From Epithemia pelagica (taxonomy: Eukaryota; Protista; Bacillariophyta), in the NCBI GenBank assembly GCA_946965045.2, contig OX337230.1, positions 2,232,001 through 2,296,000 on the forward strand: a stretch of DNA of 64,000 bases, in the 5' to 3' direction. The notes under the pieces were generated by a model. It was given only the letters and a program-made list of their open reading frames with translations, made no database searches and was not told where the DNA came from. Position 1 is the first letter of the stretch; every line of letters begins with the position of its first letter. Positions 1 through 42,300 of this stretch are shown here, piece by piece. Position numbers and translations under genes: made by a program.

Positions 1-2
1 AA

Positions 3-694
3 GGCTTTGCATCATTGTCCAGATTCGGGCGGCAAAATCACATCCAGCAGCCGATGGAAACGACCCACGTCAACAGTTTGGTCAGTTCAAGGTCATCGCA
101 GAGCTGCTCTCCAACGACACTCTTTGCGACAGAAGAAAAGGCTGCTCCAATGGTAACGGGAGAAGAACTGGAACTTATGCTACAGGAGTGGGATCAACCC
201 CTTGTTTTGGATGCCTACGCGACATGGTACGTGTTGGTCGAACTTCTTCGACCAACGTCTTTGAACATACGACGTCGTGATGTTTACTTGCGATTCTGCA
301 AAATGCCAGAGCATGTCGTCATTATCTCACAAACATGAAATGTGTCTGGCTATTGCTGTTGCTCCTTTTTTCATGATTCTACGTGATTCGCAGGTGTGGT
401 CCATGTGTATTGATGGCACCAGAATTTGAATCGGCTGCACAGGAACTCAAAGGTCGGGTGCGGTTTGTCAAGATGGATACTGACCAAGAAGAGACCATGG
501 CAGCTCGCTTAAATATCATGGGATTGCCAACTCTCCTTTTCCTGGGGAAGTACGAACCCAAAGAAGGAGAGGAGAACGCTGCTGCCAAGGCCGTATTGAA
601 AGGCAGAATTGAGGGCGCCTTACGGAAACAGGACATTGTGGATTTATGTGAACACTACTTCTTTGGGGCACCGGCGCCACAACAATTGTATTAA
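3..694 (+). CDS. Thioredoxin, TrxZ/CITRX-like, probably plastid-targeted; 5' end runs off the window; intron 227-393
   Basis: Splicing GT(227)..AG(393) joins DAYAT-W to CGPC, restoring WCGPC. The downstream VLMAPE..VKMDTDQE..GLPTLLF resembles TrxZ/CITRX. The frame is open from base 3. Confidence 0.85.
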
Positions 695-6642: not shown

Positions 6643-7358
6643 ATGGGTAACAATCTGTCCATCGTCTCGTACGAATGTCCAGAATGCAAAGCAACCGTTG
6701 AAGCATTGAAAATGTTTGAGGGAGTAAGATGTTTGGAATGTACGGGCCACGGTGCTTTCGAACGCGATTTTCGGGCGGCTGGTGAAAAGTGGCAAAATGG
6801 CGATCGAGATTTGAGCTCGTACGTCGGTCTGGTTCAAAAACTTGTCAGATCTGGTGTAGCCGAAACGTATGAAAACGAAGTGACCAGGGCTGCCCAAGAA
6901 CACTTGTCCGTCGATATGGACACTTCGATTGTGTACGACGGCATGGCTCACACTATATCGTTCGGAGGAGAGACTTATTCCGCGTACAATAACGTCCAAT
7001 CAAAAGCAAATGGACCGGCACCTATGGCTTTTCGCATATTGTTTATAAACATGAGGAAACAACCTTCAATCAGCGTATTTTTGGCAGTGTTGCCAACGTT
7101 GTGTTTCATGTACCCGGACGAAGTGGCATGGGTATTCATTCTGGACGAGAGCATGACATGGACAAGATGGGAAAGAGCGGCATGGAACACTGCACCGATG
7201 GATGCATTCGTACCACCGATGAAGTTATGAGTCGATTGGTCGTCTTTGCGGCGGCGAAAAATCCTGAACTTGTCGTGAAGAACAATGAAGATTGCATTGC
7301 CGATTATACCAGACGAAAACATGTTTGGGAAGAAGCGGCGGCTCGTGCCTCTGCGTAG
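6643..7358 (+). pseudogene. Frameshifted gene: N-terminal MGNN and two CxxC, fused to a bacterial Tlde1/L,D-transpeptidase-like domain
   Basis: Frame A gives ..YSAYNNVQSKANG(P). After a shift at about 7015-7017, frame B gives GTYGFSH..VFHVPGRSGMGIHSGR..CTDGCIRTTDEVMSRL, with an H..T-x-G-C catalytic-type motif. Confidence 0.6.
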
Positions 7359-7625
7359 AAACTATGACAAAAGTCGATGTAACTTGCATCCTCCCTGGTT
7401 AGGATCCACATCCCCACCATTCGGCCTTCTTCGTACCTATTGTCGTCAATTAAGTCATCCAAACCATCAATACCTCTAAGCAATTTCAAAACGACTCCTA
7501 GGGCACTTTGGTTTGAACAAGCTCTTTTGCCTCACTTCTCTAACTTCCAATGGCTGTAGGTAGCATGCCTAGCTCAAGTATTGGAGACTGGCGCCTTTGA
7601 TAGGAGTTGTCAGTTGCTCTCGTAT

Positions 7626-9949: not shown

Positions 9950-10905
9950 GTCTATCAGACCCAGCATTCAGCAGTCGCAGTAGTTTAGAGGTTAATGTTT
10001 GCTGTAGGCATGTAAGGTCGGGGCGCAAGACGTTTCCCCGCTGGTAAGAGATACGTCCTCTCAAGACAGGCCTGCCCCTGGGCCCTAGGGCAATAACGGG
10101 TCTACCTGTTTGCTCATAAGAGTTATGTGCATAGATGAGCGGGGGAACGAATATGTGTTTTTTATCTAACTCACCAACTATGCTAGCTAAGCTATGCATC
10201 ATGTGAAACTCCTTGGAGTTTTGCTCTTTGCCTTTTGCCCGTACTGGCAGCGGCTGATCACCGCTTGGGAGTGTTCGCGCTAAGCTACTCGTCACGGTAT
10301 GCTTGCGGCACTACTCATAGTTCACACTCGTGATGTGTGACCCATGGCATTCTCCCACGTGACGGGGAGCACTCGCTTAAGTGAGCGATTGTTTTGGTAA
10401 TCTTTTCTCCATATATGAAAATATAGATACCTCCTTTTGCACTGTGCCGACGCACACGTCCTAACTATTTGTTGTCTGCCAACTGCAGCGTAAACGCAAG
10501 TCGACACTGCTTGTGCACCTCAATTCCAGGTAGAATCGCAAAATCTGCGATCTGCATCACCTTTTGGCAATGCTCCCACACTTCTGTGTTTTTTGCCTGT
10601 GTTTTGCTCTGAACCTCTTCTGCTTCTGGCTCTCTTGCTTTCCTTTTGCCTTCCACCATGTCTTCATCCACTGCCCCTGAAAATCCCAAGGAAGATTTCA
10701 AGGCTGCCGTTAAACGCTGTGGATACAATGATGCCACCGTTACCTACATCATTGAGCAGGGTTTTGATGATGCTCAATCGTTCATGACTGTTGCGGTCCA
10801 TCAAGTGCCGTCGATGTTGAAGATGATGGCAAAGACCCCTCCAGAGAATGGGGCCTTTCCCTTCAGTGCTAACCTGCAGCTCCACGGCTTCCGAATGTGG
10901 CTCGA

Positions 10906-10929
10906 CAATACGAGCACTCGTGTATCAAT
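10906..10929 (+). repeat. Left TIR (24 bp)
   Basis: CAATACGAGCACTCGTGTATCAAT; 22/24 match to the reverse complement of 17514-17537. Confidence 0.92.
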
Positions 10930-11256
10930 TCTCCTCACCTCCACGTGCCAAAACGGTCCCAAAACCCGCCACACTCTCAAAATGACTGGCTCGCGCACCA
11001 TTATTGCCGGCCTTCCTCATTAATTACAAAAATCATACGACACAAAATATTTAATCAAGAATCATATAGAATTGTCATAGAGCTGTCTCATTTCTCTCAT
11101 TTTTCTTGATCGGCACTCACCCAGCTTGGAGGCAACATTGGTCTCGTTCCATCAAATGCCAATGGTAACGACCATGGATTGATTGATCGTCAACATCCCA
11201 ACTTCTCACAATAACATCTATTGTTTGTTTTTTGACCGTGAGCAATAACCTACAAC

Positions 11257-13134
11257 ATGCCCGGACAGGACATGCACCATCCGGTGTATGTCTACAACAT
11301 GCAAGATTCTTTTAGAATCGGTTCATTCGTCCATATTCGTTTGCCCAAACAAGATGAAGACACAACAACCATTGCCCGTCTTGATTATGCCTCTGACGGC
11401 GAATTGGCCTTAACACTTTTCTTTCCGCTCTTCCCTCCCACGGAGTTGACTTGCCACCCACCACCCCCTGACCATTCCATCGACCCAATTGTTCACGGAA
11501 CAGGCAAAGACCATATCGAGTTATACCGGTCTGGCATCCAAATCAAACAATCCCATGTGATACACAAACAAATTCCTGTCCTATACCCTGCCTTCGTCTT
11601 CAACATTCAAGATTTGTCACATCCACAAAACGCTTGGGCCTCTGGAATGCGTAATGTCTACGTTGTACGCTATAAACAACGCCGCATAGACGATGTTCCG
11701 AAACTTGTCCCCATCAAGCCTAACGAGGTTGTCTGTTTTCCCACTGAAAACATTGCTCCTGACGAGAACTCACTCATTCTCTGTCATCGCTGTTATCATC
11801 GGAATGTCTGGACGGGTCTTTACTTGCTTCGCAAGGCCATAAGTAAAGTACTGAACCGCAGAAGTGGTACTTCGGAGAAGCATCAAGTGGTCAATACCTG
11901 TGCCATTGGTCTAATACCGTTGGAAGTCTTCAATTACATTCATGTTATTGCCAATTCCAATGTCCGTACACTAACCTGTCACCACCTTTCTTCTTCAGAG
12001 TCCTACATGCATATTGACGAGCATCTTACCCGCCGTAAGCTCAAATTCGAATTTGAACAGGGTATGATGCGTTTCGTCTCCTGTGATGACATGGACCTAC
12101 TTCGCCAATTCCTCGGTCTCGGAGCTGTCTATGGCTCACCGGAAATCAAGCCTACGTTAGCAGAATCAAAGCACGGGCACTCCTTGAAAAAAGGACACGC
12201 ACTTACCCTTGTCCAAGGCTCGAATAATGAAAATGCTTCCCCTCCCTTCAAACGTTGGTCCAAGGAACAACGGGTGGATATTTCCTTCTCACCCACACAG
12301 GTTCGTGTTACAGTTTCGTATTGCCGTTACCGCTACGACACCTTCCGATCGAATGGTGCTCTCAAACACGAACCTCCTACTCCTCATCTACAGGCACTGC
12401 TACGACGTCGGAAGTACGACGAACGACCTGATACAGTCTTTTGTCCAAAATCCAAGATTTCTCCGAGTCCATCTTCTGCCTCTGGCCAGCCTTCTGATAT
12501 TTCTGGCGATATTGACTCTTCCCCCCAAGATTTTCCTGACAAGAAACCTGCCGCAGCCGATGACGACACGTTCCACCAGATCCTCAACATGTCGGAAGAC
12601 AGTATTCTGTCGGACGACGAGGAAGAGGACCAGGCTCACCCTTTAGCAACGACCATTCCTGATGTCAATTCGAAGACATCAGATGAGGCAAGTATCAAGA
12701 ATGGACCGACGAAGAAAAAGAATTCTCCCGGCTCCTCTGTTGAGGATCTTCATCTTCAACCGATGGAAGATCATATGAAAATCAAGATTGGTCTGATTTG
12801 TGCCTATGTCGGTGATCAATTCTACGACCAACAGTCCGTAGTCGAAATCGAATTCATTCTCAAGCCCTCCGTCGATAAACGATTTCTCATTCGTGACAAG
12901 AAAACGGGGAAGCTCTTTACCTCGACTATCCATTCCCCCACGTCCACCAACGAACCGTCCTTCTCTGCTGGATACAGCCACGAAGCCACCATCCCAAGTA
13001 CCAAAGGTCCGTTTTATGTATGTCGTCCAGTGGCTGGTTCCCTACACGTCAAGGATCTCGAGTCCTGTCATCAAATGATCATTGTCAAGGAACATTCTAC
13101 GGAAATACTACGCAAGATTCGTGACTTCAACTAA
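11257..13134 (+). CDS. Transposon-encoded 625-aa protein of unknown function; N-terminus BAH-like by eye
   Basis: Intact ATG-to-TAA ORF inside the TIRs. FRIGSFVHIR..IARL..LTLFF recalls the BAH pattern; acidic/Ser-Pro linker at about aa 410-490. Confidence 0.75.
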   Translation: MPGQDMHHPVYVYNMQDSFRIGSFVHIRLPKQDEDTTTIARLDYASDGELALTLFFPLFPPTELTCHPPPPDHSIDPIVHGTGKDHIELYRSGIQIKQSHVIHKQIPVLYPAFVFNIQDLSHPQNAWASGMRNVYVVRYKQRRIDDVPKLVPIKPNEVVCFPTENIAPDENSLILCHRCYHRNVWTGLYLLRKAISKVLNRRSGTSEKHQVVNTCAIGLIPLEVFNYIHVIANSNVRTLTCHHLSSSESYMHIDEHLTRRKLKFEFEQGMMRFVSCDDMDLLRQFLGLGAVYGSPEIKPTLAESKHGHSLKKGHALTLVQGSNNENASPPFKRWSKEQRVDISFSPTQVRVTVSYCRYRYDTFRSNGALKHEPPTPHLQALLRRRKYDERPDTVFCPKSKISPSPSSASGQPSDISGDIDSSPQDFPDKKPAAADDDTFHQILNMSEDSILSDDEEEDQAHPLATTIPDVNSKTSDEASIKNGPTKKKNSPGSSVEDLHLQPMEDHMKIKIGLICAYVGDQFYDQQSVVEIEFILKPSVDKRFLIRDKKTGKLFTSTIHSPTSTNEPSFSAGYSHEATIPSTKGPFYVCRPVAGSLHVKDLESCHQMIIVKEHSTEILRKIRDFN

Positions 13135-13161
13135 ACAGTAGGAGTAACCATTAGTCATTCT

Positions 13162-15468
13162 CTATTCGCTTTCTTCATCACTACCAATTTCATATCTTTC
13201 GCTTTGTTCCTCTTCATCTGCAACGCTCGATGATTCCGATTCGTCTTCGGACAATTCCGATTCGTCGACGGTTCGTCCTTTGCTGTCATATAACTTGAAC
13301 GCAAGATTGCGGACCGCTTCGTCCAAAGATTGTTCATACAACGCACTCTTACCGATAGTGTAATCAAATTGTAGCTCAACTCTCTCTTCCTCAGCTCCCA
13401 AAGCAACTTCGGATGGTCTGTCACTTATCAATTGACCGAATTCTATAGTTCCACCCAGGTTCTTCACCCAATCCCTTGAATAGTCCTTGTCTTCCTGTGT
13501 CAGAGAAGCAAGTTCATTCCGAATATCCTCCTCTGTATACTTTCGCATGAATATGGTACGTCGCTGTACCCATCGTGCCATCGGAAGAAGTCGAGACTGC
13601 TTCCCACGGCCTTTGCTCACGCCCCCCCCCCTTCTTTGTGTACGATTGAAAAAGTAGGTTTTGAATGCGCTATTGAACGCTTCCCAACCTTGTTGCGAGT
13701 GGTTGGACAAGTTTCGCCAGTGTTGTAGATACTCTAGTACATGTCCTGAGCCAAGCATATGGCCATAGTTGGTGATCCCCTCGGATCCGTGTAATTCAAT
13801 CCGATTGCGGAACCACAGATCTGCAGACCTTTGGAATTCCCATACCTCTTGGTCCGAGAACGGGGTCCGCTGGCGTAGTTTTGTCATTGCATCCGCGTAA
13901 TGACCAACCGACTCCTTCCATAGTTCCTTATCTTCCTCGTTGTCTATACACAAGTCCACGAAGCTAGAGATTCCAATCAGCATTGCTCGGACCTGCACGT
14001 TGTCCAGCTTTACAATTCCAACTTGCTTGGTATCCTCGTCGAAAGGTATACTCCATTGTGCTTGGTTTGTTAGGGTCCCCAGCATCTCTCGGTTGATTCG
14101 TTTCTCGAGTTCTGCTTTGAGAGTATGACAGGCGGTTACGTCACTTCCTTTACAATTGTCCGGCATCCAAGCCAACGTACCCTTTTTGGTATTGGTGAAA
14201 CCATCTTTGAGGCACATTGTCAGGATCTTAATACCCAACCGGATCTCCATGTGCAATATACATGGTACTAGATCCATCATCATGACCAAAGCCGAGTTGG
14301 CATTGCCCTGTCCAAACTTCTTCACAGTTTTAGAAGCATCATGGTACGTCCACTCGGAAACATGTTGAAGAAAGAGCCGTGCCTGCCTTTGTACGAGAGA
14401 TCCTTCCAGCGATAGGTCGCGTAAGGCCAAGTCTTCTGTGAGGTAGGTAGAATAAGTTTTCCGTTGTGGACGGGTTGCTTTTTCCAAATCGAAATGAATG
14501 GAAGATAAATTGTCTTTCTCATTCTCACCATGTGGAATCCGAGGATCACCCCGCACCGCTATGTGAGACTCATCCCAAATCTCTTCGATCTGCTTGCTTA
14601 TTGCTGGCATGTCTTTTTCGAACCGTTTGACTCTACTGCGTAGTGTCTTCAGGTGCTCTGGTGTGCACATTTTGTGGTGGCGGCACTCCCATTCTGGTAT
14701 ATTGTCGTGTCCCATAGCATAACACCAATTACAGAATATCCTCTCTTCTTCTGTTGACTCGTCATCGTCTTGTGGATATGTAGGCATGGCCAGGTTGGTA
14801 GATTCTATAGGACACTTTGTACATGGGAAACGGGCATTCTTGGCTGCACCTCCACATCCTGCGAGTTTCCACTCGCAGGACATGTCGCAGTTCGTAACGA
14901 TCCAGATTGCCATAATGCCGAGGAGACGGGGGAGTATTGTATGCGCAGCTTCCGCAATCTCAGCGAACAAGATGGAGAAAATTCCTCGAACGTTCTTCTT
15001 TTTCTCACCTCCCATGACACATAGAAGAGGTGTGACATCATTCCGGGAGGAGGTGAGTGGGTTGGAGCTGTCGTTAAACTTCAACCCGGCCATTGTGATT
15101 TGGTGTTTCTTAGAAAGGGTGGCTCCGTCGAGAGTCTGTGCCATCATCAAGTTTCGGGACTTGGCATCCTCCGCGACGTCACGAGCGAGTATGATTTCCC
15201 GACCCATATCGGATGGGCGGAAGTAGAATCCTTCCGAACCGTCGTTTGTGTCTCTAATCATCTTGAAGCGTATCTTGATATTTCCAAAGGATTCAATCAT
15301 CGCCGCCATTTGTTTTAGGGAACTGGAACTAGGGATCATAGTTCGCAAATGCTTTTTACCGTCGTTCTCACATCGGCGAAGAATCTCGATTCCTTCGAAG
15401 GTTAATACCCCCCCTGCCAAGTCCATGTGGCGTAGAATCCGGAAGGGGGTAAAGACTGTTGTCCGCAT
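13162..15468 (-). CDS. DDE transposase core, RAG1/Transib/Chapaev-like (768-aa ORF)
   Basis: In order: TLDGA (D114), PLLCVMGGE, TNCDM (D195), PCTKC, CILHMEIR, ITNYGHMLGSGH, SQQGWEAFNSAFK (E596). Collinear with the RAG1 core motifs CDG, PLCLMLADE, GYDEK, CTLC, ALHCDI, ITNYFHKTLAH, SEGNESGNK. Confidence 0.8.
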   Translation of the reverse strand: MRTTVFTPFRILRHMDLAGGVLTFEGIEILRRCENDGKKHLRTMIPSSSSLKQMAAMIESFGNIKIRFKMIRDTNDGSEGFYFRPSDMGREIILARDVAEDAKSRNLMMAQTLDGATLSKKHQITMAGLKFNDSSNPLTSSRNDVTPLLCVMGGEKKKNVRGIFSILFAEIAEAAHTILPRLLGIMAIWIVTNCDMSCEWKLAGCGGAAKNARFPCTKCPIESTNLAMPTYPQDDDESTEEERIFCNWCYAMGHDNIPEWECRHHKMCTPEHLKTLRSRVKRFEKDMPAISKQIEEIWDESHIAVRGDPRIPHGENEKDNLSSIHFDLEKATRPQRKTYSTYLTEDLALRDLSLEGSLVQRQARLFLQHVSEWTYHDASKTVKKFGQGNANSALVMMMDLVPCILHMEIRLGIKILTMCLKDGFTNTKKGTLAWMPDNCKGSDVTACHTLKAELEKRINREMLGTLTNQAQWSIPFDEDTKQVGIVKLDNVQVRAMLIGISSFVDLCIDNEEDKELWKESVGHYADAMTKLRQRTPFSDQEVWEFQRSADLWFRNRIELHGSEGITNYGHMLGSGHVLEYLQHWRNLSNHSQQGWEAFNSAFKTYFFNRTQRRGGGVSKGRGKQSRLLPMARWVQRRTIFMRKYTEEDIRNELASLTQEDKDYSRDWVKNLGGTIEFGQLISDRPSEVALGAEEERVELQFDYTIGKSALYEQSLDEAVRNLAFKLYDSKGRTVDESELSEDESESSSVADEEEQSERYEIGSDEESE

Positions 15469-15504
15469 GAAAGTTTTGAATTGCCGTAGGAATCGATGTT
15501 GTAA

Positions 15505-16995
15505 CTATCCGCCATGAAGGTCCGAGCCCAAAAACATATCGGCTAATAACTGAAAGAACTTGTCCGTTCTTCGACTGTCTATGGCATGGTTCTGTACGCT
15601 TTGTTTTACAACATCGTGGATGTAGTCAACGATCTCTTGGGCGCGGTCGTCATCGGTACAGGAAGAGGGAGGAAGTCGTCCATATTTTTCCTCATTCTCT
15701 TTCCTTGCTTCCTCTAGAGAGCGAATTTTGTCATCTTTGGCTTTGATATTTTTATCCTGGACCTTGTTACGTCGTTCCAGCTTTCGGATCTTATCTCTCA
15801 TCTCTCGAAGTCGTTCTTTCAGCAAATCAATGCGTGCAACAAGCAGATCCTTTTCGCGTTGGGGAGATAGAGGTTGTCGAACTGGTGAATGAGATACACG
15901 GGTGATTGCTGCTCTTGGAGATGTCAAGTTGCGACCGGCTAGGGAGGGGGGGGGGGGGGGGGAGAGAGGAAAAAGTTGGCTGCCAGTTAGTGGACGGCCA
16001 TTCGCGTCATTGGTGGTTGGAAAGGTCCTTGCACCCTCGAACAGACTCTGGTTGGGGAGCGTGGAGGTTGTATTTGTATTGGTTGTCGTTGGAGAACGGG
16101 TAGCTGTTGGGTTCAAAGTTGTCTGTGACAACATGTCGGTTTGAAAGATTATCGTCGTAGGTTGATGAGAAGATTGTGGTGGTTCGGTAGAACCTTGTTG
16201 CAATCTGCCCGTTGAGTCAATTTGTTGTGCTTCTGGGGAAGAATGACCATCGGTCCTATTGGATTCATTGATATTCTCTGGATTGGGAAGAAGAGTCGTC
16301 CTACGAACAGTCTCTGTTCCGTGTGATGACTCCTCGTCATCAAGAGTGGTGGTAAGAACAACGGCTTGCTTTCGACGGTGAGTTCGTTGCATCGGTGAAA
16401 TATTGGGAGCGGGTCCATTGCTTTGGTTCTGGTTTGTAGGATTCGTCAACGCGGCCGTAAGATTTTGATTCAGCACTATCACGTGCGGTTTTGGGACTGG
16501 ACGCGATTTCTGGCCTCGGGGAAGAATAGCTTTGACACGTTGGGTTGGGTATCCGACGCCGGTATGTTCGCATTTGCAGCTCCAACGTCCATTTTTCACC
16601 TTTCTGTTGACGTAGACGGAAGGATTTGTCTTCTCGTATTCGTCTGCGTCGTGACAGTTCCCACAGAACTTGAAGCCACGATAGATTTCTCGGCGATAAC
16701 TTCCAAATACAGAACAGGGCTTGTGCGTGTGCTTCTTGAACTCTCGACAGATGCGGGCTATTCTTTCTCTTTCGTCGTACGTAGCTATTAATGGAGTTCC
16801 GTCGGAAGACAGCCTTTTTGCCCGAGTTTGCTTGTTGGGAGAGGGTGGCCTCTTGGCAATTTCGAGTTGCTTTCGTCCATCTATGACCTTTCGTGCAAAT
16901 TTAGGGATTGGTTGACAAGGAAAGGTTCCATCCCTCTTCCTCCTCTGTCGGCAACGTCGAGGAGAGGATTTCTTCGACTTGCTCCGAGTCTTCAT
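15505..16995 (-). CDS. Probable N-terminal half of the transposase (basic NLS-like start, Cys/His cluster, low-complexity linker, coiled coil)
   Basis: In frame with 13162-15468 across a single TAG (LHGG*LQHRFLRQFKTFMRTT). Contains CxxC (FCGNCH) and CKCEH; heptad-like LLVARIDLLKERLREMRDKIRKLE. Confidence 0.7.
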   Translation of the reverse strand: MKTRSKSKKSSPRRCRQRRKRDGTFPCQPIPKFARKVIDGRKQLEIAKRPPSPNKQTRAKRLSSDGTPLIATYDERERIARICREFKKHTHKPCSVFGSYRREIYRGFKFCGNCHDADEYEKTNPSVYVNRKVKNGRWSCKCEHTGVGYPTQRVKAILPRGQKSRPVPKPHVIVLNQNLTAALTNPTNQNQSNGPAPNISPMQRTHRRKQAVVLTTTLDDEESSHGTETVRRTTLLPNPENINESNRTDGHSSPEAQQIDSTGRLQQGSTEPPQSSHQPTTIIFQTDMLSQTTLNPTATRSPTTTNTNTTSTLPNQSLFEGARTFPTTNDANGRPLTGSQLFPLSPPPPPSLAGRNLTSPRAAITRVSHSPVRQPLSPQREKDLLVARIDLLKERLREMRDKIRKLERRNKVQDKNIKAKDDKIRSLEEARKENEEKYGRLPPSSCTDDDRAQEIVDYIHDVVKQSVQNHAIDSRRTDKFFQLLADMFLGSDLHGG

Positions 16996-17513
16996 TGCAA
17001 TAGAGCAATGGTTGTCGTGTCTCCTGGCTAGGATCTGACAGAGGGTCTCTGTTGGATGGAAAAAGATGAGATCAGTTTGACATCGGCCAAAATTCCAAAA
17101 AAGGAGATTGAACAACGATCAATGTGCGATTGGGGGGGTATGTTTGTATTAAGGAATGTATATATTTTTCCCGTTGAGGAAAGCCGGTCGAGATAGTTTT
17201 TGTGCAGTGTGCCACAATTTGGGAAAAATTTGGGGGGGCCTATTTCAGGTGCCAAATGCACGCCAATGCAACGTCGATAGGTGTTATATTCTATGTGATT
17301 TAGATTCTCCATTATCGAAAATGTCTAAATGTATCGGAACATAACACTCAACGGCAATCGGTTTGGTCCAAAAGGTCGTTGGAAGTGAGATGGTCGGTTT
17401 TGGGGAAATTTATTTAACAAATTGGGGTTGGGGGAGGAGTACATATGGAGGGTATAGTGAGAGTGTCACTTTCTGAAGGATGAATGAGTCGCATTTGGGA
17501 AACGCCAGCATGG

Positions 17514-17537
17514 ATTGATACAGCAGTGCTCGTATTG
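17514..17537 (-). repeat. Right TIR (24 bp)
   Basis: ATTGATACAGCAGTGCTCGTATTG, the reverse complement of the left TIR with 2 mismatches. Confidence 0.92.
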
Positions 17538-18282
17538 AATACCGTTTGTCTCGTGGTCAGGCTCTTAAAGTCTCACTCTTCTCTGATCCGCCCCTGATCA
17601 AGAAATGGACCAAACGTACCCAGGAACTGTTTGCGCTCAACAAGGAAGTTGCCTCCGATGAACTGACCCCACCGAAAGAGTTGACTTCGTTTACTCAGTG
17701 GGAGGTGTTTAACGATGCCTTGCTCACATTCCTTGCGCAGCATCGCAATCCTACAACGGGTGTCCCTTTGACGTACGTCCTTCGTGAAACTAAGCCTGTT
17801 GGTTCTGAAGCAAGGAATGCTGCCTACGATACTATCGATGACGATTTGATTGCTACAACTATCCTGCAAGGCGATCAGTATGCCCTTGACAATCAACGCG
17901 TCTTCATGCTGATGAAACCTTTTCTTGTTGGCGGACCTGGCCTGACGTTCATCAAGCCACACCAAAAGAAGAAGGACGGTCGTGAGGCGTATCTTGCGTT
18001 GACTCGCCAAGCTACTGGAACAGCAGCTGTCACCATCCGCAAGAAAGAAGCATACGCTGCTATTGCCGACGCGAAGTTTACGGGCCACGGTCGTTTCTCG
18101 TATCAACAATACGTTCATCGCCATCAGAAAGCTCATAATACGTTGGCTGAACTTGATGAACCCGTTGCCGAAACCAAAAAGGTAACCGATTTCCTCAAAG
18201 GTATATCGGATCCCTCTTTGGTGGCGGGAAAGACGGTCGTCAACGGTGACGCAGCAAAGCTCTCTGATTTTGAAGCATGCCA

Positions 18283-19935
18283 CGAAAAATCCTGAACTTG
18301 TCGTGAAGAACAATGAAGATTGCATTGCCGATTATACCAGACAAAAACATGTTTGGGAAGAAGCGGCGGCTCGTGCCTCTGCGTAGAAACTATGACAAAA
18401 GTCGATGTAACTTGCATCCTCCCTGGTTAGGATCCACATCCCCACCATTCGGCCTTCTTCGTACCTATTGTCGTCAATTAAGTCATCCAAACCATCAATA
18501 CCTCTAAGCAATTTCAAAACGACTCCTAGGGCACTTTGGTTTGAACAAGCTCTTTTGCCACACTTCTCTAACTTCCAATGGCTGTAGGTAGCATGCCTAG
18601 CTCAAGTATCGGAGACTGGCGCCTTTGATAGGAGTTGTCAGTTGCTCTCGTATTTATAATTTCGTAGAAAATCCCCGTTTTCCCCGTAATTCAAGGATGC
18701 GAACCTGCGACCGGAGCTTTCTGTGAAGTGAATCTTTCGTCTTTTCCTAAGATCGCACCATCAACGTCTCAGCATCATTGTTCCTATTGAACTCAGCAGC
18801 GTCCTTCTCTTCGCTTCATCTATCCAAGTGACCCAACCACCATCATGGTATTGAATCAAATTCGAGCGCGCTTCGGCAAAGCTCTAATGGAAGCGATTGG
18901 AACTTTTGTGTTGTTGTTGACGATTCAATTGGCAGTCCATTCGCCGTCGAACTCTGACAAGGCTCCCATGTCCATTGGTTTGGTGCTTATGGTCTTGGTG
19001 TACGCCGGTGCTCCGATTTCTGGAGCCCATTACAATCCGGCCGTGACGTTGGCCTTGACCTTGACGGGTCGAGGATGTTTTCATGCGCACGGTCTGATTG
19101 TATATTGGATCTTTCAATGCGCGGGCGCCATTGCTGGCGCCGCGGTCGGCAATGCCTTGATTCCAGACAACGACGAAGCGGCAAACATTGCTGTGGATTC
19201 TCATGTCACGGTTTGGCAAGCCTTGGGTGGTGAATTGGTCTTTACGACCCTTTTGTGTTTGGTCGTCTTGTGTACCGCCACGCACTCCAAAGTCGAAAAC
19301 AATGGCTATTTTGGCGCCGCCATTGGTTTGACTGTCACGGCCGGGGCCGTGGCGGCTGGTCCATGGTCCGGTGGAGCCTTCAATCCGGCCGTGTCCTTGG
19401 GATTGGGTATCGTGGCCATGGATTTGGGCAGTGGATACAATTTCATTACCGCCCTGGTCAATTTGTTGGGCGGTGTCATGGCAGCCGCCCTGTTTTACCT
19501 CGTGGCACCGGATCAATACGACCCGACACAGAGCCAGTACGAACCCATTGCCGGAGGAGTGGCTGCATAAGTGGAGGACCGCGACCAAAGACAGAAGGCA
19601 ACAGTAGTTATGCAGGAATCATTGTCTCACAAAATCATCCATAAATTAATGAGAAAAGGACTTCGAGTTGGTTGGGCCATGTTCGCTTAGAAAGAATATC
19701 GGTGCCGTGTTCTTACCTTGTGCCAGATATCTGACCGTAGGCCATGATCGTGTTGGAAGTCTGTTTTCTGCATTATAGCCGCATGCAATAGGGAAAACGG
19801 GAACTTTTTGTGAGGCTATGGCTCGCCACTAGCTAGAACTACCTACTCCCATGGTGAGAGAGAGATATTCGAATCATATCCAAGAATACTCATTGGGAAT
19901 GAGATGCGTCGTTAAATAGAAGTTTCGTGACCAAC
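18283..19935 (+). repeat. Duplicated host segment, copy A', ending at the empty Copia insertion site
   Basis: Matches 7255-9762. After GTGACCAAC it continues into unique host DNA (TGAGCCAAT) instead of the LTR. Confidence 0.95.
18845..19570 (+). CDS. Aquaporin (MIP family), copy 2, same protein as copy 1
   Basis: Same 241-aa translation, and the overlapping alternative-frame ORFs listed in the track are also identical. Confidence 0.95.
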   Translation: MVLNQIRARFGKALMEAIGTFVLLLTIQLAVHSPSNSDKAPMSIGLVLMVLVYAGAPISGAHYNPAVTLALTLTGRGCFHAHGLIVYWIFQCAGAIAGAAVGNALIPDNDEAANIAVDSHVTVWQALGGELVFTTLLCLVVLCTATHSKVENNGYFGAAIGLTVTAGAVAAGPWSGGAFNPAVSLGLGIVAMDLGSGYNFITALVNLLGGVMAAALFYLVAPDQYDPTQSQYEPIAGGVAA

Positions 19936-40129: not shown

Positions 40130-41668
40130 TCAGGTCTGCTTTGTGGCCTTATCAGCAAGGGCAGCTTTCGCAACGGCAGTTGTAGGCTCCTTGGTTTCAT
40201 CAGGGTTGTGCGGCTTTGTAGATCCTTTTTTACTATGGGCAAAGCGTCCGAAACTGTTTCCGGCTGAGGTTTTGGGGACAGTCGGTTCATCAGCAACAGG
40301 AGGATCAGGCTCGGAATGGTTCGGCGCGTCGTTGCCATCCAGGTCAGTGGTCTCCAATTTCATGTGATCAGACTTTGGAGTTTCAGTTTTACTCAACTTG
40401 CGAGAGCCATTTTCATCTTCAGTTCGCACGGCTCCGGCCTTGCGCTTTCCATTAGCGTCTTTCTGTTCTTTACGGGCACGGAGGATTTCGGCCTTCTCTT
40501 CATCAGAGAGCTTGCGCCATTCATCCAAACTGTAATGACGTGTCTTCTTCTTATTCTGCTTGTTACGACCATTCTTCTTTCCACTAGTCTTAGTCGTACC
40601 CACACCAGCAATCTTTCGATTCTCGTCATTGGTCTTGTCGGTACGGGATGCAGCAATCAACGTGCCAAAATACTGCTGGCATGCTTCAAAATCAGAAAGC
40701 TTTGCTGCGTCACCGTTGACGACCGTCTTTCCCGCCGCCAAAGAGGGATCCGATATACCTTTGAGGAAATCGGTTACCTTTTTGGTTTCGGCAACGGGTT
40801 CATCAAGTTCAGCCAACGTATTATGAGCTTTCTGATGGCGGTGAACATATTGTTGATACGAGAAACGACCGCGGCCTGTAAACTTTGCGTCGGCAATAGC
40901 AGCGTATGCTTCTTTCTTGCGGATGGTGACAGCTGCTGTTCCAGTAGCTTGGCGAGTCAACGCAAGATACGCCTCACGGCCGTCCTTCTTCTTTTGGTGT
41001 GGCTTGATGAACGTCAGGCCAGGTCCGCCAACAAGGAAAGGTTTCATCAGTGTGAAGACGCGTTGATTGTCAAGGGCATACTGATCACCTTGCAGGATAG
41101 TAGTAGCAATCAAATCGTCATCGATAGTATCGTAGGCAGCATTCCTTGCTTCAGAACCGACAGGCTTAGTTTCACGAAGGACGTATGTCAAAGGGACACC
41201 CGTTGTGGGATTGCGATGCTGTGCAAGGAACGTGAGCAAGGCATCGTTAAACACCTCCCACTGAGTAAACGAAGTCAACTCTTTCGGTGGGGTCAGTTCA
41301 TCGGAGGCAACTTCCTTGTTGAGTGCAAACAGTTCCTGGGTACGTTTGGTCCATTTCTTGATCAGGGGCGGATCAGAGAAAAGTGAGACTTTAAGAGCCT
41401 GACCACGAGACGAACGGTATTCGAGCCACATTCGGAAGCCGTGGAGCTGCAGGTTAGCACTGAAGGGAAAGGCCCCGTTCTCTGGAGGGGTCTTCGCCAT
41501 CATCTTCAACATCGACGGCACTTGATGGACCGCAACAGTCATGAACGATTGAGCATCATCAAAACCCTGCTCAATGATGTAGGTCACGGTGGCATCATTG
41601 TATCCACAGCGTTTAACGGCAGCCTTGAAATCTTCCTTGGGATTTTCAGGGGCAGTGGATGAAGACAT
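40130..41668 (-). CDS. gag: Copia Gag
   Basis: ORF between the 5' LTR and pol; GVPLTYVLRE and HYSLDEWRKLS motifs; no CCHC knuckle seen. Confidence 0.88.
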   Translation of the reverse strand: MSSSTAPENPKEDFKAAVKRCGYNDATVTYIIEQGFDDAQSFMTVAVHQVPSMLKMMAKTPPENGAFPFSANLQLHGFRMWLEYRSSRGQALKVSLFSDPPLIKKWTKRTQELFALNKEVASDELTPPKELTSFTQWEVFNDALLTFLAQHRNPTTGVPLTYVLRETKPVGSEARNAAYDTIDDDLIATTILQGDQYALDNQRVFTLMKPFLVGGPGLTFIKPHQKKKDGREAYLALTRQATGTAAVTIRKKEAYAAIADAKFTGRGRFSYQQYVHRHQKAHNTLAELDEPVAETKKVTDFLKGISDPSLAAGKTVVNGDAAKLSDFEACQQYFGTLIAASRTDKTNDENRKIAGVGTTKTSGKKNGRNKQNKKKTRHYSLDEWRKLSDEEKAEILRARKEQKDANGKRKAGAVRTEDENGSRKLSKTETPKSDHMKLETTDLDGNDAPNHSEPDPPVADEPTVPKTSAGNSFGRFAHSKKGSTKPHNPDETKEPTTAVAKAALADKATKQT

Positions 41669-42300
41669 GGTGGAAGGCAAAAGGAAAGCAAGAGAGCCAG
41701 AAGCAGGAGAGGTTCAGAGCAAAACACAGGCAAAAACACAGAAGTGTGGAGGCATTGCCAAAAGGTGATGCAGATCGCAGATTTCGCGATTCTACCTGGA
41801 ATTAAGGTGCACAAGTAGTGTCGACTTGCGTTTGCGCTGCAGTCGGCAGAGAACAAATACTTAGGACGTGTGCGTCGGCACAGTGCAAAAGGAGGTATCT
41901 ATATTTTCATGTATGGAGAAAAGATTACCAAAACAATCGCTCACTTAAGCGAGTGCTCCCCGTCACGTGGGAGAGTGCCATGGGTCACACATCACGAGTG
42001 TGAACTATAAGTAGTGCCGCAAGCATACCGTGACGAGTAGCTTAGCGCGAACACTCCCAAGCGGTGATCAGCCGCTGCCAGTACGGGCAAAAGGCAAAGA
42101 GCAAAACTCGACAGAGTTCTCACACGGTGCACACATAGCACCTTAGCATATTTCGAATATCCGAGGCAGCATAGTTCTGGTTAGAATTGGAACATAGTTA
42201 GGGGACAATCGGACGCCGATGCACTATCTGGTCATTCTGATCTACCATCGGAGAGGTGGGTCCCGATATAGGGTCCAACGGCCGGTCGTCCGATAAATCA

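Follow-up and report, generated by a model that had tools for sequence, protein, structure and literature searches.

Positions 10906-17537 of a 64,000-nt stretch of Epithemia pelagica contig OX337230.1 (the whole stretch is called the window below) are occupied by a DNA transposon of 6,632 bp, which carries a transposase gene on the minus strand and a second, partner gene on the plus strand between terminal inverted repeats (TIRs). We propose that it belongs to a two-gene cut-and-paste family, present in a probable diatom and in unidentified metagenome organisms, which forms a separate lineage of the CMCT clade of transposons, encodes a partner protein with a BAH fold and duplicates one base pair of its target; to this reading as a whole we would give a probability of about 0.78. 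In fold, motifs and termini the family fits CMCT, and by sequence, target-site duplication (TSD) and partner it lies outside every named member of that clade.

What this particular copy contributes is a direct demonstration of the one-base duplication, because an empty version of its insertion site happens to lie in the same window. The transposon interrupts a gag-like open reading frame (ORF; 10646-11023 and 17546-18295), and a paralogue of this host sequence is found on the minus strand at 40677-42025, uninterrupted; the two flanks, joined less one A, match it gaplessly over 1,350 bp with 97.2% identity. At its junction, GGCTCGAATACCG, the paralogue lacks one of the A's that the joined flanks contain: the empty site reads GGCTCG-A-ATACCG, and the filled site reads GGCTCG-A, then the element (CAATACG...CGTATTG), then A-ATACCG. 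Since the empty site has one A where the filled site has two, integration duplicates a single base pair, and deleting one A also brings the host ORF back in frame. The outer flanking bases are equal as well in six further copies taken from a long-read assembly, making seven of seven (A/A in the window and in L001, T/T in L003 and L007, G/G in L002 and L006, C/C in L008; the match in L006 assumes a G>T change in the last TIR base), an outcome with a chance probability of about 6e-5. The flanking base is a duplication and no part of the element, because it varies even within one subfamily. Other ways of cutting the junction were considered and rejected: a duplication of 0 bp, or a terminal A belonging to the element, is ruled out by a flanking base that varies (A, A, G within one subfamily), is equal at both ends and occurs once in the empty site, and a 5-bp AATAC duplication is ruled out since the two ends then become unequal.

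An initial annotation, made from the letters of the window, had described a precisely bounded 6.6-kb insertion with 24-bp TIRs, and on this the TIR match, the borders of an alignment with a second copy and the empty-site paralogue all agree. The repeats, 24 nt each, are complementary at 22 of 24 positions (92%); their pattern has two occurrences in the whole window, both of them the element ends, with 0 expected from shuffles. The borders are sharp, the alignment with the second copy spanning 10905-17538 and stopping there. In the window copy, L003 and L006 the mismatches between left and right end (CG/GC) fall at two identical positions, and the 22/24 match is therefore inherited and no sign of decay. 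Elements of the family measure 6.0-6.7 kb and end in 5'-CA(A/C/T)TA(C/G)GAGC...TG-3'. Across the 14 termini of the seven copies, which come from diverged subfamilies with transposases 43-48% identical, TIR positions 4-10 (TA[C/G]GAGC) are kept and the start is CA in 12, with 13 having C as position 1 and 13 having A as position 2. These termini read CAATACG, CAATAGG, CACT(T/A)CG or CATTACG, and they are not of the CAC heptamer type, which the annotation had already suspected in setting CAATACG apart from the CAC of recombination signal sequences and Transib; the ends of metagenome relatives start with CAATACC, CACTACC or CATTACGG. In the seven copies there are no subterminal repeat arrays, nor any repeated 9-mers in the subterminal regions beyond the TIRs.

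Between these ends the two genes stand tail-to-tail, the stop codons of the partner gene and of a 768-aa ORF holding the transposase core being 27 bp apart (13135-13161); the ORF coordinates agree with the minus-strand DDE gene and plus-strand 625-aa gene originally proposed. The seven motifs reported for the transposase (TLDGA, PLLCVMGGE, TNCDM, PCTKC, ILHMEI, ITNYGHMLGSGH and QQGWEAFN) are found in that order in the translation of the 768-aa ORF. An AlphaFold2 model of the core, built from 44 sequences (confidence scores pLDDT 85.5 and pTM 0.82), has the strand/helix order of ribonuclease H (RNase H), with D114 on strand 1, D195 just past strand 4 and E596 on a helix. D114, D195, C216, C219, H406 and H576 are invariant in 44 homologues and E596 is nearly so; H570 is conserved in at least 90% of them, and C246, C249, C262, H264 and C403 are invariant or nearly so. 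The core includes a second Cys/His cluster, C246-x2-C249...C262-x-H264, while the pair H570/H576, spaced H-x5-H, lies 26 and 20 residues before E596. Both the modelled fold and the CxxC...H..H residues agree with an RNase H-type DDE enzyme bearing a zinc motif, as had been suggested. The model superposes on the RAG1 core (residues ~460 to ~1005), with modules equivalent to DDBD, PreR, RNH, ZnC2/ZnH2 and CTD.

How near to RAG1 this brings the enzyme is a more delicate question. A fold comparison of the kind proposed in the initial annotation puts RAG1 (Foldseek E 8e-9), amphioxus BbRAGL (4e-6) and HzTransib (3e-5) far ahead of other solved structures, Hermes standing at 1e-2. One might then see here a true Transib/RAG1-like lineage, sister to or member of the group from which RAG1 came, and a stramenopile analogue of ProtoRAG that would bear directly on how RAG originated. 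Two other observations point the same way: the spacings D195-C216 (21) and H576-E596 (20) resemble those of RAG1 (D708-C727, 19, and H942-E962, 20), and among the 100 nearest clusters of a language-model search about 19 have RAG1 Pfam domains, Transib-annotated clusters occur too, and 0 have Transposase_21. However, solved structures of CACTA, Chapaev and Mirage enzymes are absent from the comparison, and to our knowledge there are none. When predicted models are searched by shape, Transposase_21 (CACTA), DUF1280 and unnamed eukaryotic clusters match with TM-scores of 0.51-0.56 over 437-483 residues, and a RAG1 family is absent from the sets listed for the 99 nearest models; 15 AlphaFold clusters come ahead of row 16 (L8YCQ6, listed without a name), a probable RAG1 orthologue to judge from its accession and aligned range.

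Sequence comparison likewise gives this closer kinship no help. PF02992 and the RAG1 Pfam models (RAG1_RNase_H, RAG1_pre-RNase_H, ZnC2, ZnH2) match none of the 44 members at E<=1, a Pfam search with the three ORFs of the element, nine full-length homologues and the 44 alignment members has no relevant match even at E<=1, and PDB sequences are unmatched by the core at E<=10, whether as single sequence or profile. Transib and its RAG1-like kin have a 5-bp TSD and heptamer-like ends, CAC(A/T)(A/G)TG, whereas here the duplication is 1 bp and the ends are CAATACG; the RAG1-type core fold is shared with HzTransib (6PQX/6PQN) and mouse RAG1 (4WWX, 5ZDZ), without similarity of sequence that HMMER detects, and the partner is unlike RAG2. 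On balance we find a Transib/RAG1 affiliation improbable. Of the RAG1-related lineage originally suggested, the motif order and the fold therefore stand, and a special closeness to RAG1 does not, given the lack of Pfam or PDB sequence matches and CACTA models that fit as well or better; the annotation had itself warned that the motifs are broadly shared across CMC/Transib and that closeness to RAG1 was unproven, and the motif set and RAG1 match are indeed treated as clade-wide in the literature (PMC12730594).

That clade, CMCT, brings together EnSpm/CACTA, Mirage, Chapaev, Transib, Plavaka and ESTA, as well as Lanisha, with a C(2)C motif that follows the second D, H(3-4)H before the E, CA..TG termini and TSDs of 2-5 bp as shared traits (PMC12730594). 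Its ESTA lineage also matches RAG1 in HHpred, such a match being common across the clade, and some lineages carry extra genes, for example TET/JBP, plausibly aimed at epigenetic silencing (PMC12730594). The family described here is alike in its DDE residues on an RNase H-like fold, C216-x2-C219 after the second D, termini of the form 5'-CA...TG-3', a structural match to RAG1 and an extra gene. Two histidines also precede the E, but spaced by 5 residues. It differs in its 1-bp TSD, against 2-5 bp for the clade, and in its convergent BAH-fold partner, and no member's Pfam model recognises its transposase.

The likenesses could also be taken to mean that this is an ordinary member of a catalogued superfamily, such as a divergent EnSpm/CACTA or Chapaev standing in Repbase, whose odd features are minor. 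Features such as 5'-CA..TG-3' ends, C(2)C, a His pair and a structural match to RAG1 are generic for CMCT, and extra genes such as TET/JBP are known from its other lineages (PMC12730594). EnSpm/CACTA (TnpD, PF02992, with TnpA) is the obvious candidate: the predicted folds agree at TM ~0.51 over ~480 residues, CACTA elements encode two proteins too, and the L002 subfamily has CACTA-type ends (CACTA/CACTT). However, PF02992 matches 0 of 44 members, the window copy ends in CAATA, the TSD of 1 bp (3 bp in EnSpm/CACTA) is outside the 2-5 bp of the clade, subterminal repeat arrays are lacking, and the second gene, which lies on the other strand, has a BAH fold and is not related to TnpA by any of the fold searches. 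Searches of full-text papers brought up no diatom element of this kind, no BAH partner and no 1-bp TSD so worded. We think membership of a catalogued superfamily unlikely, and favour a separate CMCT lineage.

The partner gene is, to our mind, the most distinctive part of the element. A model of its product (pLDDT 74.9, from an 18-row alignment) has four parts, and we assign its N-terminal domain to the BAH fold with moderate confidence; a language-model search gives weak BAH leads (score 0.63), and neither Pfam nor PDB sequences, searched with the single sequence or a profile, are matched by the partner. No Kelch propeller occurs in the model or among its structural matches, and for this reason the partner is unrelated to RAG2. 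The comparison with ProtoRAG of amphioxus (BbRAG1L/BbRAG2L, 6B40), which the initial annotation had drawn, accordingly holds for the convergent arrangement of transposase and partner between TIRs and fails for the partner itself, where a BAH domain and an SH3-like barrel are modelled in place of a six-bladed Kelch propeller; TSD and TIR sequence differ also. With such a partner, lacking the propeller, the two-gene arrangement would have arisen independently of ProtoRAG and RAG2.

The association of the two genes extends to strongly diverged members. In each of the loci retrieved (L001-L008) the transposase has a partner homologue tail-to-tail with it, so that the convergent layout first noticed in the window is conserved across the family: identity of the partner to its homologues is 42% in L001 and 38% in L002, and the metagenome contigs L005 and L004 have one by BLASTP (E 2e-22) and by hhalign (probability 90.6%), respectively. 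Of 57 metagenome loci that extend 1 kb or more past the downstream end of the transposase ORF, 55 have a partner homologue (profile E<=1e-3) directly downstream on the opposite strand, down to 24-25% transposase identity. No free-standing partner homologue outside elements turned up in the searches, which a word filter limited.

One may still ask whether the partner is no transposition cofactor but a passenger, kept for some other purpose such as countering host silencing or regulating how the element is expressed, or else a host gene that was captured and plays no part in the DNA reactions. BAH domains generally act in silencing and chromatin reading, to judge from the titles of the PDB matches, the TET/JBP genes of other CMCT lineages plausibly target epigenetic silencing, and an interaction of partner and transposase is hypothetical. 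Yet the same position and orientation, kept down to 24-25% transposase identity, would be hard to explain if the partner were dispensable, and the search for free-standing homologues, within its word filter, gives a captured host gene no support. We hold this alternative to be rather unlikely; it differs from the reading we prefer only in the step where the partner acts.

We would picture transposition by this family as follows. A transposase dimer would bind the ends through an N-terminal Cys/His module, a coiled coil helping to pair them, and the element would be excised, probably through nicks and hairpins as with RAG, Transib and hAT enzymes; its 3' ends would then be joined to target phosphates that lie one base pair apart on the two strands. 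As a cofactor that reads chromatin, the partner would tether the transposase to nucleosomes or license it there, a logic like that of RAG2 with its PHD finger, but independently acquired. A stronger version, in which the family is a RAG1-fold lineage of superfamily rank that integrates with a one-base stagger, and whose transposase cannot do without a BAH chromatin reader gained as its partner independently of RAG2, we put forward only tentatively, at somewhat less than even odds.

Several points weigh against our interpretation and should temper it. The placement as a separate lineage is provisional, and the family may already stand in Repbase or Dfam. The His pair, H-x5-H, departs from the H(3-4)H of the clade. 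The BAH assignment has a fold-only basis, at the pLDDT given above, and Pfam BAH (PF01426) matches none of the 18 partner members at E<=1; a role of the partner in transposition, like its contact with the transposase, is hypothetical. Finally, the flanking bases are equal in only 3 of 11 short-read metagenome contigs, and the 1-bp TSD is for this reason established for the long-read genome only; the mismatched flanks may be chimeric joins of assembled repeats from different insertions.

Even so, the case seems to us of interest beyond diatom genomes. RAG1-RAG2 and its ProtoRAG relatives are the only well-studied RAG1-type nuclease that we know to work with a second protein, and why such an enzyme needs a chromatin-reading partner is an open question, both mechanistic and evolutionary. 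A RAG1-fold enzyme paired over deep divergence with an unrelated chromatin-reader-like protein suggests that the two-component design arises repeatedly, which could be tested in a second system. If our reading is true, this would be a second independent pairing of a RAG-type nuclease with a chromatin reader, with intact, recently mobile copies in a microalga. The 1-bp TSD, being outside the range reported for the clade, constrains how two active sites engage the target DNA, and uninterrupted relatives (e.g. L001, L002, L007, L008) might serve as a genetic tool for diatoms. The window copy alone has a more modest value, as one of many copies and one with a premature stop.

Table 1. Features of the transposon and of its partner protein (positions in the window, or residues where so marked).
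Feature	Position	Strand	Basis or remark
Left TIR	10906-10929	+	CAATACGAGCACTCGTGTATCAAT
Right TIR	17514-17537	-	reverse complement CAATACGAGCACTGCTGTATCAAT
Partner gene, 625 aa	11257-13134	+	ORF; fold domains from model
Transposase C-terminal catalytic core, 768-aa ORF	13162-15468	-	ORF; acidic tail
Premature in-frame TAG in transposase	15505-15507	-	frame analysis, homologue collinearity, read contigs
Transposase N-terminal part	15508-16995	-	alignment with N-termini of 8 full-length homologues; probable ATG 16995
Target-site duplication, left copy (A)	10905	.	empty-site paralogue
Target-site duplication, right copy (A)	17538	.	empty-site paralogue; flank comparison
Partner, BAH-fold domain	residues ~1-160	+	model, fold search
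Partner, alpha/beta middle domain	residues ~180-395	+	model; no match
Partner, disordered acidic/Ser-rich linker	residues 396-497	+	model
Partner, SH3-like barrel	residues ~502-625	+	model, fold search

The transposase gene of the window copy is longer than was first thought. The initial annotation equated the 768-aa ORF with the transposase; this ORF does hold the catalytic core, but it corresponds only to the C-terminal two thirds of full-length relatives, which have 1,000-1,200 aa (for the transposase of the family we give about 1,100-1,280 aa), and a third ORF (minus strand, 15505-17115), in frame with it and separated from it by a single TAG, had been overlooked. The upstream ORF aligns with the N-terminal third of eight full-length homologues, collinear through the stop, giving a whole gene of ~1,277 codons from the probable ATG with one premature stop. 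Its N-terminal part consists of a conserved Cys/His module (KPCSVFG...FxFCGNC...C...H), a variable low-complexity linker, a coiled coil (PDB sequence searches with the N-terminus return coiled-coil matches only) and a stretch leading into ...HLRxTVFTPF. An intron joining the two ORFs was considered and rejected, the sole GT..AG candidate being 50 nt long and frame-breaking, with homologues collinear through the stop.

The stop is not peculiar to the assembly used, because contigs from three public runs of the same organism have the same letters at 15505-15507: those of X1 and X2 are identical over 14857-15940, TAG included, and the X3 contig over 14857-15634 has no other letter there. X1 may be the source sample of the window itself. 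Because of this TAG the window copy, whose partner gene is intact, is probably mobile only with transposase from another copy. No uninterrupted transposase of its own subfamily was present among the homologues searched; in L001, L002, L007 and L008, which belong to other subfamilies, both genes are uninterrupted. Two homopolymers in the gene are also variable. A run of ~17 G at 15945-15966, encoding poly-Pro in the N-terminal part, varies by -1, +1 or +2 among contigs of the three runs, for which reason the reading frame there appears uncertain or unstable; the second, a ten-C run at 13622-13631 in the C-terminal region, is frame-breaking in other copies, with a 2-nt deletion in L003 and in contigs of run X3.

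Other copies with the same TIRs and both genes, for which the initial annotation had proposed a search, were indeed found, and the family has moved recently. The second copy of the same subfamily, L003, is 97.8% identical over exactly 10905-17538, lies at an unrelated site and has several frameshifts; its private indels are present in run X3 contigs from the same organism, and for this reason it is a paralogue within that organism. Between these two copies pN/pS is 0.44-0.64 from few changes, which is weakly compatible with part of their divergence having been under selection. More widely, the transposase family counts 1,222 cluster representatives at E<=1e-3, and an Atlas cluster among the predicted-model matches of the core has Bacillariophyta as its commonest known phylum, which is our ground for speaking of a probable diatom; a neighbouring aquaporin gave no clue to the host taxon. 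A scan of viral contigs gave no relatives, and a profile search of a 5.8-billion-protein set for distant relatives with Pfam annotation gave, under the word filter, only the same family.

A few minor observations may be added. One environmental data set (contigs JFJP01...; L009-L019, L023, L029, L040 and L046) has many relatives of 5.0-5.2 kb, with transposases 33-35% identical and CAATACCAGCCATAG as their ends; their partner is shorter (~400-470 aa), and of the profile it covers just the BAH domain and the middle domain. Within the transposase, residues ~340-372 of the 768-aa ORF (14360-14450) are weakly suggestive of a SAP-like stretch (E 2.3), and the neighbours by structure and by language model include one protein annotated as SAP and one cluster that is so annotated in part. 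Word depth in run X3 is ~1,000 over 11200-12000, the first 800 bp of the partner gene, against 85-190 elsewhere in the element; expression, a further repeat or a family of fragments could be the cause.

As for the host sequence, without the element and one A (10646-10905 joined to 17539-18295) it is a single ORF of ~339 codons, with its paralogue 23 kb off. Since this gag-like ORF has a 97.2% identical uninterrupted paralogue, the transposon is nested in a repeated retroelement, having landed in a retrotransposon gag-like ORF. Just right of the host ORF, a 118-bp stretch (18283-18400) recurs, 99% identical, at 7255-7372, probably as another fragment of the same repeat.

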